Part shown: piece after piece, positions 40,877 to 46,686 of the stretch | How the letters are laid out: every line of letters begins with the position of its first letter | Numbering within the stretch: position 1 is the first letter of the stretch | Origin: Octopus sinensis | Lineage: Eukaryota | Assembly (NCBI RefSeq): GCF_006345805.1 | Contig: NC_043003.1 | Location: 39,370,001 to 39,434,000, forward strand | Length of the DNA stretch: 64,000 nucleotides | Direction: 5' to 3' | The notes under the pieces: generated by a model | The model's database searches: none | Seen by the model: only the letters and a program-made list of their open reading frames with translations | Told to the model about the DNA's origin: nothing | Translations under genes and position numbers: made by a program

Positions 40877-40905
40877 AATTCAAAACTCTGATGACATCAG
40901 AATGA
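40877..40905 (+). CDS. TnC: Troponin C terminal exon 5a (E-FKTLMTSE*)
   Basis: Strong acceptor ttttatctttttgcag, then AA TTC AAA ACT CTG ATG ACA TCA GAA TGA. Completes Glu12 of EF-IV and the exiting helix (EFxxLM). Gives a 150-aa protein if the tentative exon 1 is used. Confidence 0.88.
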
Positions 40906-41619
40906 AGCAACCTGTTCATCACCTGTCCACCCGTCCACCCGTCCACCCGTGTCTAAATTGAATTCCATGTATCTCGAAAGGACACTCAAAGACGTTATTT
41001 TTCTTCTCCAGTTACTTTTAGTTCCTCTATTCTTTCTACGTCTACTTACACTTACTCTCTCAGTTTTTTTTTTATCTCTTTCACTTACGGCCTACTGACT
41101 ATCACACATCTTTCTCTGAAGATGACACACAGCCCTTGGCACGTCGATATATTGCTAATAATGCTAGTTATAACCTTCGTATATATCTTTCTCTAATCGA
41201 TCGCACACTTACCTATACCCAATCCGTCCCCTACCCATTCCTGCCAATAGCAAACACAACATCCAGTTAATTTTACTTCTTAATTAATTTGTCTACTTAT
41301 TATTTATGCCAAACCTTTAATTTTTGACATGCTTCATTCAACTATGACTAATACCACAACTACTACTACTACACCACTCTACAACTATTATCAACAACAC
41401 CATTATTGCACATCTCCATTACCACCACTACTATTATTAAACAAGGAGATAAAAAGAACATTCAGCCACTATCACTGCTGTCTAGGATTTTTTTAACAAT
41501 CTGTCCGCTGTATTTCTTTTCCTTCAGTATGTGTACTTAAGAAACAGTAAAGTTTTACTGCTGGAATGGGGAGGAAGAGTTTATTGTCTAAGCTTCGTGA
41601 CAATTGCTGACACATAATA

Positions 41620-42600
41620 ACAATAAAAAAAGTTCTCTGCATACTGAGTTCAAATGCAGCTGACGCCTGATTTACTTTCATCCTTAGGGGTTCAATAAAA
41701 TAAGCACCAGTAATATGCTGTGGTACATATTAAATGAATTTACTCTACCCTTCTCGCTCATTTGTCCATCCTCTCAATTATGTTGTTTGGCAGACTTGTT
41801 AATGTTGCACAAAATATCTTGCTGCATGTCTTCCAACTCTTTACATTCTGAGTTCAAATCCTGCTGAGGTCACCTTTGCTATTCACCCTTTTGGGGTTAT
41901 AAAAATGAAGTGCCAGTGAAATACTGAGGTCGATGAAGACGACTGCACCCCACCTCCAACTCCTCCAAACTTTTTCCTCTAAAACGAGAAACAATTATCA
42001 TTATTGCTATTATTATTGGTGGTATTAAGGCGGTGAGCAGACAAAATCATTAGCACACCGGGCAAGATATTTAGCGGTATTTTGTCCGTCTTTACATTCT
42101 GAGTTCAAATTCCGCTGATACCGATTTTGCTTTTTTTCCTTTCGGGGTCAATGAAATAAGTACCAGTTGATCAATGGGGTCGATGTTGTCGACTAGTCCC
42201 CTACGCCAAAATTTCAGGCCTTGTGTCTATAGCAGAAAGGATCATTATCGATGGTATTGCTTGTTATGCTGTTATTGACGGTGGTGATGGTGGGGGAGGG
42301 GTGATGCTACTGATAGTAGTAGTGGTGGTCATGGTAGAAGTGGTGGTGGCTGCTAAGTTTTTTATGTGGTGGATGTATATTTGCTATGTTTATAATTATT
42401 GTTTTCGTTATAATTAATATTGTTGCTATCGTTGTTATTGTAAATGTTATTGAAGAACAGCAAGTCGGCTGATGCAGCAGAGCATCAGACTAAATGCTTT
42501 CGTCAACAAATCTGAGTTCAAATCCCACCAGGGTAGACTTTGCTTTCTCATCCTTCCAGGATCGAAATTTTAAGTACAATTCATATCTTGGTGGGAATGA
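41620..42600 (+). mobile_element. Cluster of four decayed Meta-like SINEs between exons 5a and 5b, all sense
   Basis: gagttcaaat...ctttc/gtacc cores at about 41646, 41850, 42100 and 42515. Confidence 0.7.
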
Positions 42601-43752
42601 CACTCTAACTAAAACTAAGTTTCTCTCTCTCTCTCTCTCTCTCTATTTCTCTCTCTCTCTCCCTCTATCTATCTATCTATCTCTTTGTGCTAAATTTTCA
42701 GTTATTGTGCCAATGTTATATTATTGTATTATTGTTGTTGATGTTATTGTTCTTACTAGGGTAACAGAGAATGGAAAGGAAGAAGTCAGAACTATTTTAA
42801 CGATACTAACGAGTTCTATAATACACTAACATTAAATCAAATTCACAACTAATTTAGCAACAGGGAAAAGGTGTACAAGTAACATTCGGGGTTGTTACCA
42901 TTACAGCAGAACACGTGACTATTACACCACTTCCTCATCTTTGTTACTTAGTCAAGAGAAATAACCTTCATTATCATCACCATCAGCATCATCATCTTCA
43001 TCAACAGCCGCATCTCTATCATCAATGTTTTCGATTATTCTCTTTACTTATCTCACATGTGCCAAAGATTAAGCACATCTGAACATTAGCACAGAAGCAT
43101 GCGCGCGCAGCATACACATAATAATAAAAATAATAATCATTACTGTTGTTGTTGTCACTATTATTAGAATTAGAATTATTATTTTTGGGGTTTATTTCAT
43201 GATTAATATTTAACATATTTACATTTCTTCATTGCAGTTGTTTCGTCGTCGTTGTTGTTGTTGTTCTTAGTAATGTTCACGTTATTTTGTATGCAACAAA
43301 CTATGGCATAATGTCTTTATTTCTCATTATTTATCTTTGTTTAACTCTCTCAATCTATCCATCTAGATGTCGCTTTCAGTCAATGTACATAAATACAAAT
43401 ATTACATATCTGTGTGTGTGCATATGCATGTTTGTATATGTATGTGTGTGTGTGATGTGCATGCGTACGTGCATCAGTATATATGTATATGTCTATATAA
43501 AACTTTTATAATAATAAATAATGATAATAATAATAATAATAATAATAATAATAATAATAATAATAATAATGATCATGATAATGATAATAATAATGATGAT
43601 ATAGATAAACATATTGTATACATATAAATATGCTTATATATACATGTATACATATAAATATGCCTATATACATATATATATATATTATATATATATATAT
43701 ATATATATATATATATATATATATATATATATATTATATATATATATATATA

Positions 43753-44129
43753 TACAAGAGTTACGGAACAAAGTAGATAAGATCTGGGCTACATATGTTT
43801 CGTAGCGAGTGGAACCTCAGAAATGGTAAATATTCAAGCGAGGCGTATACCGCAGGCTTGTCTTCAAACTGAGGATATCTTGATTAAATGAAATGTTACA
43901 TTGTTGCAAGGAGGTACATGTTGAAGCCTGGAAAGTTCACTCTGAACTTCCCAGGCGTCAACGTATACCTTCTTGCGACAATGTAACATTTCATTTAATC
44001 AAGATATCCCCGGCTTGATGACCAGCCTGCGGTATACACCTTGCTTGGATATTTACCACTTCTGATATTCCGCTCGCTATGAAACATATGATTGAAGGAT
44101 CTTATCTACTCCACTTCTTAACTCTCGTA
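43753..44129. repeat. Fold-back with 187-bp arms and a 3-nt loop
   Basis: 43753-43939 aligns without gaps to the reverse complement of 43943-44129, with many substitutions. Confidence 0.9.
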
Positions 44130-46660
44130 TTCCTATTCGCACACCCAGCAACCCTGGTCGCCTACCGTGAAATATAAAAAGTACATTTTTCAGCTTATCG
44201 TACTTCGATACGAAAAACTTCCACAATCTTCCGTCTCAATAAACCACTATTGTCCCTGGAAGTTTTTCTTTTAATAATTACTACGGATTGCTTGAAACTA
44301 ACTTTATTCCTCCACTTCGATCCCTGGATCTTATATGTATATATATATATATATAATATATATATATATATATATATATATATTTCCTCCATGTGATCGG
44401 CTTCAAAAATTGTTAAGACACTAGGATATTTTTCTATGTTCCTTAACATGAAACCAATGGTAGCCTTGATTCATAAATAAATAAATACATACATATATAT
44501 ATACATATATGTATATATATATATATATATATATATATATATATATATATATATATATATATATGTAATATTTTATGAAAAAACATTATTTGAAACTTTT
44601 GTATTTTTAAGTTGCTCCTTTTTTCTGTTTTTCTACACATTGTCCACTGTTCATCTCCAACTACTATTACTACTACTATCAGCATTGTAATTATTAATGT
44701 CTTTCTTCTTATTGTTCCTGTTGCTAATATTTTGTTTCTTGTTATTTCAATACATAGCCTTGACAAGAAATGAATGCATGCCTCTATTCACATAAATTAC
44801 TCTGTTTGCCATTGACAATATACAAAATACAAAATTGCGAAAAATAACTGTATAGCGAGATTCAAGATTCATCTAATGTATTTATACTATGGAGACGAGG
44901 TTACCAGGCAAGTGATTTGATGTGATACTATCTCTTAGAACTAAAGCAGATGCATTGTGGGAGACACGTGCTAGCTATTTATTTGTAATAAAGAAAGCTT
45001 CTAACAAAGCAGAACATTTTACAAAAACGACTTTATATTTCGAACGCAAAGGCCTTATATACATATGTTACCACCTCAAAATATTAGAATATGTTTCAAC
45101 ACGATTTCACATCAAGTATCTTAAAACGTATATATACATATATATATATATATAATATATATATATATATATATATAATATATATATATATATATATATG
45201 TATATATATATATATATATATATATATATATATTATATATATATATATATATATATACATACATGCATATCCAAATACATATATGGATATTTGCTTGTAT
45301 ACATACATATATTTGTATATTTTTATATGCTTGTATGTATATATATCTATGTGTCTATGAGTGAGTGGACGGGGGCACATGCAGTTACAACTCTGTATAC
45401 AGAAGGACAAACTACTAATCGTCCGTAAAGTGTCCGGTTTTGCGGATGATAGTGAAAGCGAATGCCAGAACAAATAATAAAAGTATGATATTAATCTCCA
45501 TATATTAATAATACTTTTGTTTTAAGCTTGACTTTATCTTTTGTTTCTATTTTCTTGCTCTAAATAATTGTTTCCTTATTTGTTATCGTAGCTATTGTCA
45601 TTGTTTAATGTATGCAAATCTTTTTTGCTTCACCTTCCTTGAATGTTATTCAAACTTTCATATATGTCTGTATTTGTGTATGCCTCAATATATTAATTAA
45701 TCTATGTGTTTATCTACTTAAATCAATATACATAAATCTATGCATATAGGTAGGTGTATATATGTATATATATACATATACATATATACACACACACACA
45801 TATATATATATATGCGTACATATATGTATACAGAGACAGATATCGATTCAGTTCCACCTACTCGTAAAAATAAAAAATGAAAGGTGACTATTTGAATACA
45901 CCCAAAAATGTAAACACATGGACATGCTTTTTTTGAAATGAATTGGTGAATATGTCCTGCAAAATGTAACTAACATATTTAGGATGTAGTTTATTGGATA
46001 TGCCTAAACCATATACCCAAGCATTCATAGACAAAAAGAAAACATTCACACACGCACGCACACGCATACGCATACACATGTTCAACACATATTGAAACAT
46101 ATGCTATGTATTAAAGTACAACTAACACAGGCATTGGAAACTTTATCTTACTTGCCTTGACTATTTTACTAACTTTAGTAACTATACATTAGCACAGTCA
46201 AATTAACAATAGACTGTAGTAGCTGTGATGGTTATCCAATGACAAATCCTCGCACCCACATCCACGCGCACTACATAAAAACGTATATTGCATATACATA
46301 AACTAGAAAGTAATATTTTCTGATGCAACATTATATATATACATATGTATATGTGCATATATATATATGTATACATATATATATTCATATATATATATAT
46401 ATATATATATACATATATACACACATATATATATACACACATATACATACCCAAAGTATATAATCTACATATCAACATACAAAAAATGTATATATATGTA
46501 ATATGTATATATATACAATTATATATATATGTATACATATATATATATATATCATATACATATCCATAATATATTATCTACATATCAACATACAAAAATC
46601 TTATATACTATTCAATATTTTTTTTCTTTCACTCATTAAATTTTTCTCTCATTTTTCCAG

Positions 46661-46686
46661 AATTTTCTAAACTGATGATGGAGTGA
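46661..46686 (+). CDS. TnC: Troponin C alternative terminal exon 5b (E-FSKLMME*)
   Basis: Strong acceptor tttttctctcatttttccag, then AA TTT TCT AAA CTG ATG ATG GAG TGA. Same phase and EFxxLMxE pattern as 5a. AATAAA at 46846 and 46894. Gives 149 aa with the tentative exon 1. Confidence 0.85.

Follow-up and report, generated by a model that had tools for sequence, protein, structure and literature searches.

Several thin-filament isoforms are specified by the choice of a last exon and of the poly(A) site belonging to it, as in the 3' exon choice of tropomyosin, and scallop troponin C (TnC) is said to occur in two forms, TnC-long and TnC-short, an account ascribed to Yuasa & Takagi. The two scallop forms had been mentioned in an earlier note on the DNA analysed here, and the databases bear this out: UniProt entry Q9U8L7 carries the name 'Troponin C-short' and isoforms X1 and X2 are recorded. 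Exon 4 of the scallop gene (Mizuhopecten/Patinopecten yessoensis) ends as GAAG/gt—a slash marks splice junctions throughout—inside the Glu codon at position 12 of EF-hand loop IV; it is followed by an exon reading EFKCLMMSSDA and a stop and, 427 nt on, by a second reading EFKTLMIGA and a stop. The article of Yuasa & Takagi (2000, Gene 245:275) is cited in PMC8310146.

The TnC gene of Octopus sinensis was examined in a 64,000-nucleotide stretch of genomic DNA, here called the window, to which all coordinates refer (Table 1); it matches chromosome CM016865.1 of this species at 100% identity. The octopus gene has its last coding intron at the same position as the scallop gene and, like it, carries two tandem stop-bearing terminal exons, with the longer tail (S-rich in scallop) in the proximal exon, 5a, and the shorter (hydrophobic plus Gly in scallop) in the distal exon, 5b. 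The two genes differ in exon spacing, which is 427 nt in scallop and 5.8 kb in octopus, and in the tails themselves, those of octopus being EFKTLMTSE and EFSKLMME. We propose, with a probability of about 0.9, that 5a and 5b are an ancient pair of alternative last exons used from the exon 4 donor, each with its own 3'UTR. The principle is that of tropomyosin-type alternative last exons, although the alternative coding part of octopus TnC amounts to just 8–9 residues.

Table 1. Features of the troponin C gene in Octopus sinensis, in window coordinates.
Feature	Position	Strand	Content and basis
TnC coding exon 1			ATG only; some 29.1 kb 5' of the start of the window
TnC coding exon 2	22397..22421	+	GVTDKQVN and the first base of the next codon; tblastn, splice sites read
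TnC coding exon 3	25610..25753	+	Non-canonical EF-hand I and start of EF-hand II; tblastn
TnC coding exon 4	27666..27908	+	Remainder of EF-hand II, all of EF-hand III and most of the EF-hand IV loop; tblastn
Intron between exons 4 and 5a	27909..40876	+	Extends to 46660 if 5b is used
Terminal exon 5a, coding part	40877..40905	+	(E)FKTLMTSE and TGA; A-type tail, isoform X1, 147 aa
5a 3'UTR, start	40906..41035	+	Conserved with Argonauta; homologous to Sepia A-type 3'UTR
Terminal exon 5b, coding part	46661..46686	+	(E)FSKLMME and TGA; B-type tail, isoform X2, 146 aa
Probable 5b 3'UTR	46687..46870	+	End inferred; first ~90 nt conserved with Argonauta, resembles Sepia B-type 3'UTR

Exon 4 ends at its donor as GTA GAT TAT GAA G/gtatgg, at the first base of the Glu codon at loop IV position 12. 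Two mini-exons had been placed 13.0 and 18.8 kb past this point from the letters alone; the introns measure 12,968 nt to 5a and 18,752 nt to 5b, and the exon sequences are as had been described. The sequence ttttatctttttgcag precedes 5a, whose acceptor reads ...tttttgcag/AA and whose 29 nt read (G)AA TTC AAA ACT CTG ATG ACA TCA GAA TGA, with the stop at 40903–40905; ctctcatttttccag precedes 5b, with acceptor ...tttttccag/AA, 26 nt reading (G)AA TTT TCT AAA CTG ATG ATG GAG TGA and the stop at 46684–46686. Both acceptors are phase 1 and served by one common upstream donor, and the same phase, separate acceptors and own stop codons ascribed to the exons all hold. The split codon G/AA receives its last two bases from 5a or 5b alike. 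A pattern common to both, AG/AATTY-N6-YTN-ATG, has exactly two matches on the two strands of the 64 kb, namely 5a and 5b, with 0.07 expected from shuffles.

Spliced together, exons 1–4 and 5a give RefSeq XP_029638723.1 exactly (isoform X1), and exons 1–4 and 5b give XP_029638724.1 exactly (isoform X2); the 5b tail also equals the C-terminus of O. vulgaris CAI9725625.1, and the annotated gene range ends precisely at the 5b stop. These records describe the same feature, those of O. sinensis with identical proteins from the same assembly, and we find no difference from them. It is confirmed that octopus TnC can end in either of two tiny last exons, and that the pair is real, ancient and already known: the earlier observation holds and recovers the exons afresh from raw sequence, but it brings nothing new, since both forms are annotated in this genome and the same switch is found across molluscs, and the novelty implied by the earlier note falls away. 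Literature searches yielded no paper on cephalopod TnC isoforms.

Two tails on one core could also arise from two genes, as tandem paralogues, and TnC-like paralogues do lie in tandem elsewhere: Capitella, for example, has two neighbouring genes and Babylonia two loci. Exons 2, 3 and 4, however, each occur once in the window, and tblastn shows no other TnC-like sequence between the two terminal exons or past 5b; RNA contigs of the cuttlefish Sepia esculenta are nucleotide-identical from the 5'UTR to the GAAG junction and then continue into either an A or a B tail; and isoform pairs with identical cores are present in many species. We give the two-gene reading next to no credence, and retain that of alternative last exons of a single gene.

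Both isoforms match Pfam EF-hand_7, EF-hand_1 and related models, complete through the last hand, and four EF-hand motifs are present in the 146 or 147 residues. Three loops are non-canonical: in loop I (DKKGDGAVPTKE) positions 3 and 9 are Lys and Pro, in loop II (DEEATGFIYWDN) position 12 is Asn, and in loop III (DKNNQGVIDVED) positions 5 and 12 are Gln and Asp. Only loop IV (DTDGSGTVDYEE) is canonical and predicted to bind Ca2+, which agrees with the background given in the earlier note, that molluscan TnC binds Ca2+ mainly at site IV; calmodulin, in contrast, has four canonical sites. The protein is 80% identical to TnC of the squid Todarodes pacificus (Swiss-Prot Q9BLG0) and 63% to scallop TnC, and its best-matching database entries carry the name 'troponin C'. 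It belongs with the molluscan troponins C, in the EF-hand, calmodulin superfamily, with binding of troponin I and Ca2+ regulation of the thin filament as predicted roles. Whether the query was the whole protein or its C-lobe, searches of PDB sequences returned mostly calmodulin, and no molluscan TnC–TnI structure was among the best 60 matches.

The alternative residues fall in helix H, whose hydrophobic residues, the conserved F, L/M and M, have a target-binding role in the calmodulin/TnC family; F, L and M are retained in both octopus tails. The tails differ in three respects: in the pair of residues that separates F from L, in the residue that follows LM, which is polar in A and Met or Leu in B, and in length. 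The A tail matches helix H of calmodulin (...EEFVQMMTAK) residue for residue, EEFKTLMTS against EEFVQMMTA, and we know of no calmodulin counterpart of the B-type alternative tail. The single form recorded for squid TnC has a tail of the B type, like octopus X2, and reads EFSALMLG.

The same two kinds of tail recur throughout molluscs. The A class has nine residues, EF[KR]xLM-polar-S-x, and the B class eight, EFxxLM[ML][GAE], and the octopus tails fit both. Pairs of A and B forms with the same core were found in ten further genera (Pomacea, Babylonia, Biomphalaria, Haliotis, Mytilus, Dreissena, Sinanodonta, Pecten, Mizuhopecten and Liolophura), extending the pair beyond cephalopods to three further classes—gastropods, bivalves and a chiton—with class-specific tail residues preserved across them. 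In Capitella the equivalent position (GAAG/gt or GAGG/gt) is followed by a tandem pair of terminal exons, and annelid-type transcript pairs have identical cores with ends ...LMLSN and ...LMME. Genomic exon order was checked in three octopods, the scallop and Capitella; in Capitella it is reversed. The exon pair is ancient and common to octopods, cuttlefish, gastropods, bivalves and chiton, and probably has an annelid counterpart. A stronger proposal is that A and B represent one orthologous regulated switch, undescribed beyond scallop, that is older than the divergence of the molluscan classes and maybe than the mollusc–annelid split, its residues kept for more than 500 million years because they make functionally different Ca2+ sensors; we offer it tentatively, at a little under even odds.

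Within octopods, O. bimaculoides and Argonauta hians also have 5a followed by 5b, and the Sepia contigs show both tails in use; the earlier note had suggested a search for the two exons in other cephalopod genomes. Exon 5a is identical at all 29 nt in both of these octopods; for 5b, O. bimaculoides matches at 26/26 nt and Argonauta at 25/26, the lone change being synonymous. For comparison, exon 4 shares 213 of its 243 nt with Argonauta, and exon 3 forms a conserved island in that alignment. The acceptors of 5a and 5b are kept in Argonauta, while the surrounding introns are barely alignable.

These values bear on whether one of the octopus exons might be an unused relic of an old duplication, its RefSeq isoform an unexpressed prediction. 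Consistent with a relic, no octopus RNA across either junction was found: the octopus proteins had no Logan contigs, and the two junction sequences had no match in two scans of metagenome contigs. Of O. bimaculoides, the collection that was searched has records with the A tail only or with intron read-through artefacts. Against this stand nucleotide identities between Octopus and Argonauta of 100% for 5a and 96% for 5b in introns that barely align, with acceptors kept; an annotated Argonauta isoform ending ...EFSKLMME; the transcription of both tails in Sepia; the squid protein with its B-type tail; and the class-specific residues kept across molluscan classes. A relic is in our judgement very improbable, and the use of both exons in octopus as alternative last exons is probable from the RefSeq X1 and X2 models, conservation and Sepia RNA.

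Exon duplication, which the earlier note drew from the codon-by-codon alignment of 5a and 5b, is a plausible, very old origin of the pair, but is not provable with just 26–29 nt to compare. Past the acceptor and coding stretch the flanks of the two exons have no sequence in common, low-complexity AT-rich and TA-repeat matches aside.

The coding exons are followed by distinct putative untranslated regions. A block conserved between octopus and Argonauta surrounds 5a at 40814–41035, and its 3'UTR contains three copies of CCACCCGT at 40927–40950. Past 5a, candidate poly(A) signals first occur at 41436 (ATTAAA) and 41622 (AATAAA), which would mark the poly(A) site; past 5b they occur at 46846 (AATAAA) and 46875 (ATTAAA). 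In six Sepia A-type contigs the 3'UTR extends over 517–661 nt, includes no 5b sequence, and is homologous and colinear with octopus DNA right after the 5a stop; the Sepia B-type 3'UTR is similar to octopus DNA following the 5b stop. Both tails are used in cuttlefish with distinct 3'UTRs, which argues for coupling to alternative polyadenylation. The earlier note had held that such coupling must exist; this stands for Sepia RNA, and for octopus the evidence consists of conserved UTR starts and candidate hexamers.

Exon 5a could instead be a stop-bearing cassette ('poison') exon that is spliced on to 5b, in which case both forms would share a poly(A) site and the one with 5a might be a target of nonsense-mediated decay. 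The spacing of merely 427 nt in scallop makes such a layout possible there, and the octopus poly(A) sites are candidate hexamers. The six Sepia A-type contigs are, however, independent, and each runs hundreds of nucleotides past the stop without entering 5b-like sequence; that UTR is colinear with the octopus DNA after the 5a stop, in a block conserved in Argonauta. We regard the cassette arrangement as highly unlikely, and prefer separate last exons with separate 3' ends.

With alternative last exons, splicing of exon 4 to 5a would yield an mRNA ending at a poly(A) site past 5a and encoding the 147-aa A form, and skipping of 5a would join exon 4 to 5b, 5.8 kb further, giving an mRNA with its own 3'UTR and the 146-aa B form. 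The A:B ratio might be set in each cell or muscle type by competition between splicing and polyadenylation, and the two forms may differ slightly in the hold of the C-lobe on troponin I or on Ca2+. One outcome, suggested in the earlier note, would be a TnC tuned differently in arm, mantle and heart, in its affinity for Ca2+ or its binding of troponin I; a functional difference is not guaranteed, because the amino acid differences are small and the net charge is unchanged.

Current understanding is unchanged by these observations, since the isoforms are already annotated and the scallop provides a precedent from 2000, and their practical import is modest: quantification or knockdown of octopus TnC, and comparisons of arm, mantle and heart, must take account of two forms whose 3'UTRs differ. 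Of wider interest is how deep the conservation goes: a tail of 8–9 residues at the lone canonical Ca2+ site has been kept across molluscan classes, and this argues that the tail matters for regulation. The A and B forms also constitute a clean natural pair for effects of C-lobe helix H on Ca2+ and troponin I binding.

Two further stretches that align with Argonauta were considered and set aside. About 400 nt of similarity on the 5' side of 5b, a candidate splicing regulator, is (TA)n microsatellite similarity. A colinear block at 42,480–42,900, considered as the poly(A) region of 5a, contains a tRNA-like GAGTTCAAATCCCACC motif and an ATTAAA that is not conserved, and is probably a SINE-like repeat.

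The troponin C (TnC) gene of Octopus sinensis ends in two alternative terminal exons, 5a and 5b, and direct reading and translation bear out what the earlier note had claimed of the exon 4 donor and of both exons. A pyrimidine-rich tract and cag precede 5a, which completes the Glu codon split at the end of exon 4. The motif AG|AATTY-N6-YTN-ATG has two matches on the two strands of the 64 kb, at the 5a and 5b sites only; dinucleotide-preserving shuffles give 0.07 on average.

Coordinates of TnC exons and of other features.
Feature	Sequence	Position	Description
TnC exon 1	L001 (O. 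sinensis locus)	10001-10003	ATG alone; ~29 kb upstream of the window
TnC exon 2	window	22397-22421	
TnC exon 3	window	25610-25753	
TnC exon 4	window	27666-27908	ends ...GGT ACT GTA GAT TAT GAA G, then gtatgg donor
Long (TA)n microsatellite	window	27930-28050	directly after exon 4 donor
Exon 5a	window	40877-40905	29 nt; AA TTC AAA ACT CTG ATG ACA TCA GAA TGA; EFKTLMTSE-stop
CCACCCGT tandem repeat	window	40927-40950	in 5a 3'UTR
Candidate poly(A) signals after 5a	window	from 41436, 41622	
Colinear block	window	42480-42900	similar to Argonauta L002 102530-102940
Long (TA)n microsatellite	window	46340-46560	directly before 5b
Exon 5b	window	46661-46686	26 nt; preceded by ...ctctcatttttccag; AA TTT TCT AAA CTG ATG ATG GAG TGA; EFSKLMME-stop
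Candidate poly(A) signals after 5b	window	from 46846, 46875	
Palindrome	window	58177-61736	centre near 60,180
Longest palindrome arms	window	58277-58985 / 60929-61637	709 nt, 99% complementary
5a, 5b	L003 (O. bimaculoides)	31895, 37978	
5a, 5b	L002 (Argonauta hians)	100755, 106974	
Candidate terminal exon, first	L013 (Capitella teleta)	13016	EFYKLMMD*
Candidate terminal exon, second	L013 (Capitella teleta)	13273	EFAHLMLSE*

Both TnC forms are already in RefSeq. Exon 4 and 5a, used as a protein query, match molluscan troponin C, and the O. sinensis records comprise isoform X1 (XP_029638723.1, 147 aa, C-terminus EFKTLMTSE) and isoform X2 (XP_029638724.1, 146 aa, C-terminus EFSKLMME), the latter identical to CAI9725625.1 of O. 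vulgaris. O. sinensis CM016865.1 is 100% identical to the window over 56.7 kb, and the gene range on record stops at the 5b stop codon, window position 46686. Exons 1–4 joined to 5a give X1 exactly and joined to 5b give X2 exactly; what the observation correctly recovered is therefore a feature that the annotation already contains. In O. bimaculoides, two public models appear to be artefacts of annotation: P0124 opens with 28 residues encoded by intron sequence ahead of exon 2, and P0125 ends in ...VDYEGMVYGIYI, an intron read-through after exon 4.

Loop IV, DTDGSGTVDYEE, reads as a canonical EF-hand loop, and loops I (Lys at position 3, Pro at 9), II (Asn at 12) and III (Gln at 5, Asp at 12) depart from the consensus. 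One canonical Ca2+ site, as had been proposed, agrees with the single site of scallop TnC (PMC12040844; also the title of Ojima et al. 2000). The split codon G|AA, completed by either exon, encodes the Glu at position 12 of loop IV, and the residues past this Glu form the exiting helix H, for which calmodulin EEFVQMMTA is the alignment partner. F, L and M are invariant between the tails encoded by 5a (A-type) and 5b (B-type), which differ between F and L (KT versus SK) and after LM (Thr versus Met), the B form being one residue shorter; Pfam EF-hand matches are full in both. The observation is accurate and its structural interpretation right; that the switch may alter Ca2+ or troponin I binding, and that its usage may differ between muscles, is a reasonable inference.

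Both exons, which the earlier note had proposed to seek in other cephalopod genomes, are present with order and acceptors intact in two other octopods, O. bimaculoides and Argonauta hians. Against Argonauta, 29/29 nt of 5a, 25/26 nt of 5b (the sole change, GAG to GAA, is synonymous) and 213/243 nt of exon 4 are identical, and the 13-kb and 5.8-kb introns have almost no alignable sequence; an annotated ...EFSKLMME isoform exists in Argonauta. The two (TA)n microsatellites produce spurious cross-species BLAST "conservation". The block between 5a and 5b that is colinear with Argonauta carries a tRNA-like GAGTTCAAATCCCACC motif and a (CT)n run; it is more probably a SINE-like repeat than a regulatory element.

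The two tail classes recur as same-gene isoform pairs with identical cores in gastropods, bivalves and a chiton, Pecten and Mizuhopecten (bivalves) included.

Tails of same-core TnC isoform pairs.
Genus	A-type	B-type
Pomacea (gastropod)	EFRNLMNSN	EFYKLMMG
Babylonia (gastropod)	EFRTLMNSN	EFCKLMMG
Biomphalaria (gastropod)	EFRNLMCSN	EFYKLMMG
Haliotis (gastropod)	EFKNLMTSA	EFYALMNDK
Mytilus (bivalve)	EFKSLMTSD	EFYTLMMG
Dreissena (bivalve)	EFKSLMSSE	EFYALMMG
Sinanodonta (bivalve)	EFKSLMSSE	EFSNLMLA
Liolophura (chiton)	EFKSLMSSE	EFRHLMMA

Tails of the A class are 9 aa long: a basic residue follows EF, and polar-Ser follows LM. In the 8-aa tails of the B class, LM is followed by Met or Leu and then by Gly, Ala or Glu. 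A homologous case is already published for scallop, whose TnC-long and TnC-short isoforms, reportedly the subject of Yuasa and Takagi in 2000, carry the counterpart tails EFKCLMMSSDA and EFKTLMIGA. These long and short C-termini, mentioned in the earlier note, are evident in the scallop genome, where exon 4 ends GTAGATTATGAAG|gt, EFKCLMMSSDA* comes next and EFKTLMIGA* lies 427 nt beyond it, and in the name of UniProt Q9U8L7, "Troponin C-short". What the present analysis adds is that the exon pair appears to be pan-molluscan and possibly older; no paper describing a pan-molluscan pair was found in a literature search of incomplete coverage.

In the annelid Capitella teleta (KB306072.1; L013 12269-13301 and 2345-9574), a TnC-like gene shows two candidate terminal exons in tandem after ...GWVDYE G|gt, each with its own stop, and a tandem paralogue upstream ends EFYTLMTTE*. 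Three annelid-type transcript pairs have identical cores and differing tails (e.g. ...LMLSN versus ...LMME). Because the Capitella exons come in the opposite order to those of molluscs, orthology outside Mollusca is no more than possible.

No contig matching either octopus TnC protein was found in the Logan assemblies, nor any match to the octopus junction sequences in two scans of metagenome contigs. Direct RNA evidence comes from the cuttlefish Sepia esculenta, for which runs SRR20545814 and SRR19578103 are larval and juvenile transcriptomes: the tail is ...EFKNLMTSE in contigs L004–L009 and ...EFSKLMLE in L010 and L011. L004 and L011, from different runs, share every nucleotide from the 5'UTR as far as GACTATGAAG and then diverge, exactly at the octopus exon junction position. 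All six A-type contigs extend 517–661 nt past the stop without 5b-like sequence; the first ~100 nt of this UTR (CCCATCACCTGTCCACCCGT...GATTCCGTGCACCTCGAA) are homologous to octopus DNA directly after the 5a stop, a block also kept in Argonauta, and the B-type UTR is similar to the octopus sequence that follows the 5b stop. These data support the proposed coupling of the 5a/5b choice to alternative polyadenylation, for which the octopus poly(A) signals are candidates. The CCACCCGT repeat has three copies in both Octopus species and a single copy in the Sepia transcript; Argonauta has more copies, which are partly degenerate.

The N-terminus also varies. Sepia TnC begins with either M-V-V-I or M-P-V-V-I, and the 5'UTRs of the two forms are entirely different (L004 versus L010), and all four N-/C-terminus combinations exist (P0004, P0130, P0131, P0132); O. 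bimaculoides XP_014768462.1 begins MSPE..., unlike the ATG-only exon 1 of O. sinensis. This variability suggests alternative first exons or promoters. Unrelated to troponin C, the large, near-perfect palindrome downstream, with nested arm pairs 93–100% complementary, may represent either a foldback element or an artefact of assembly.
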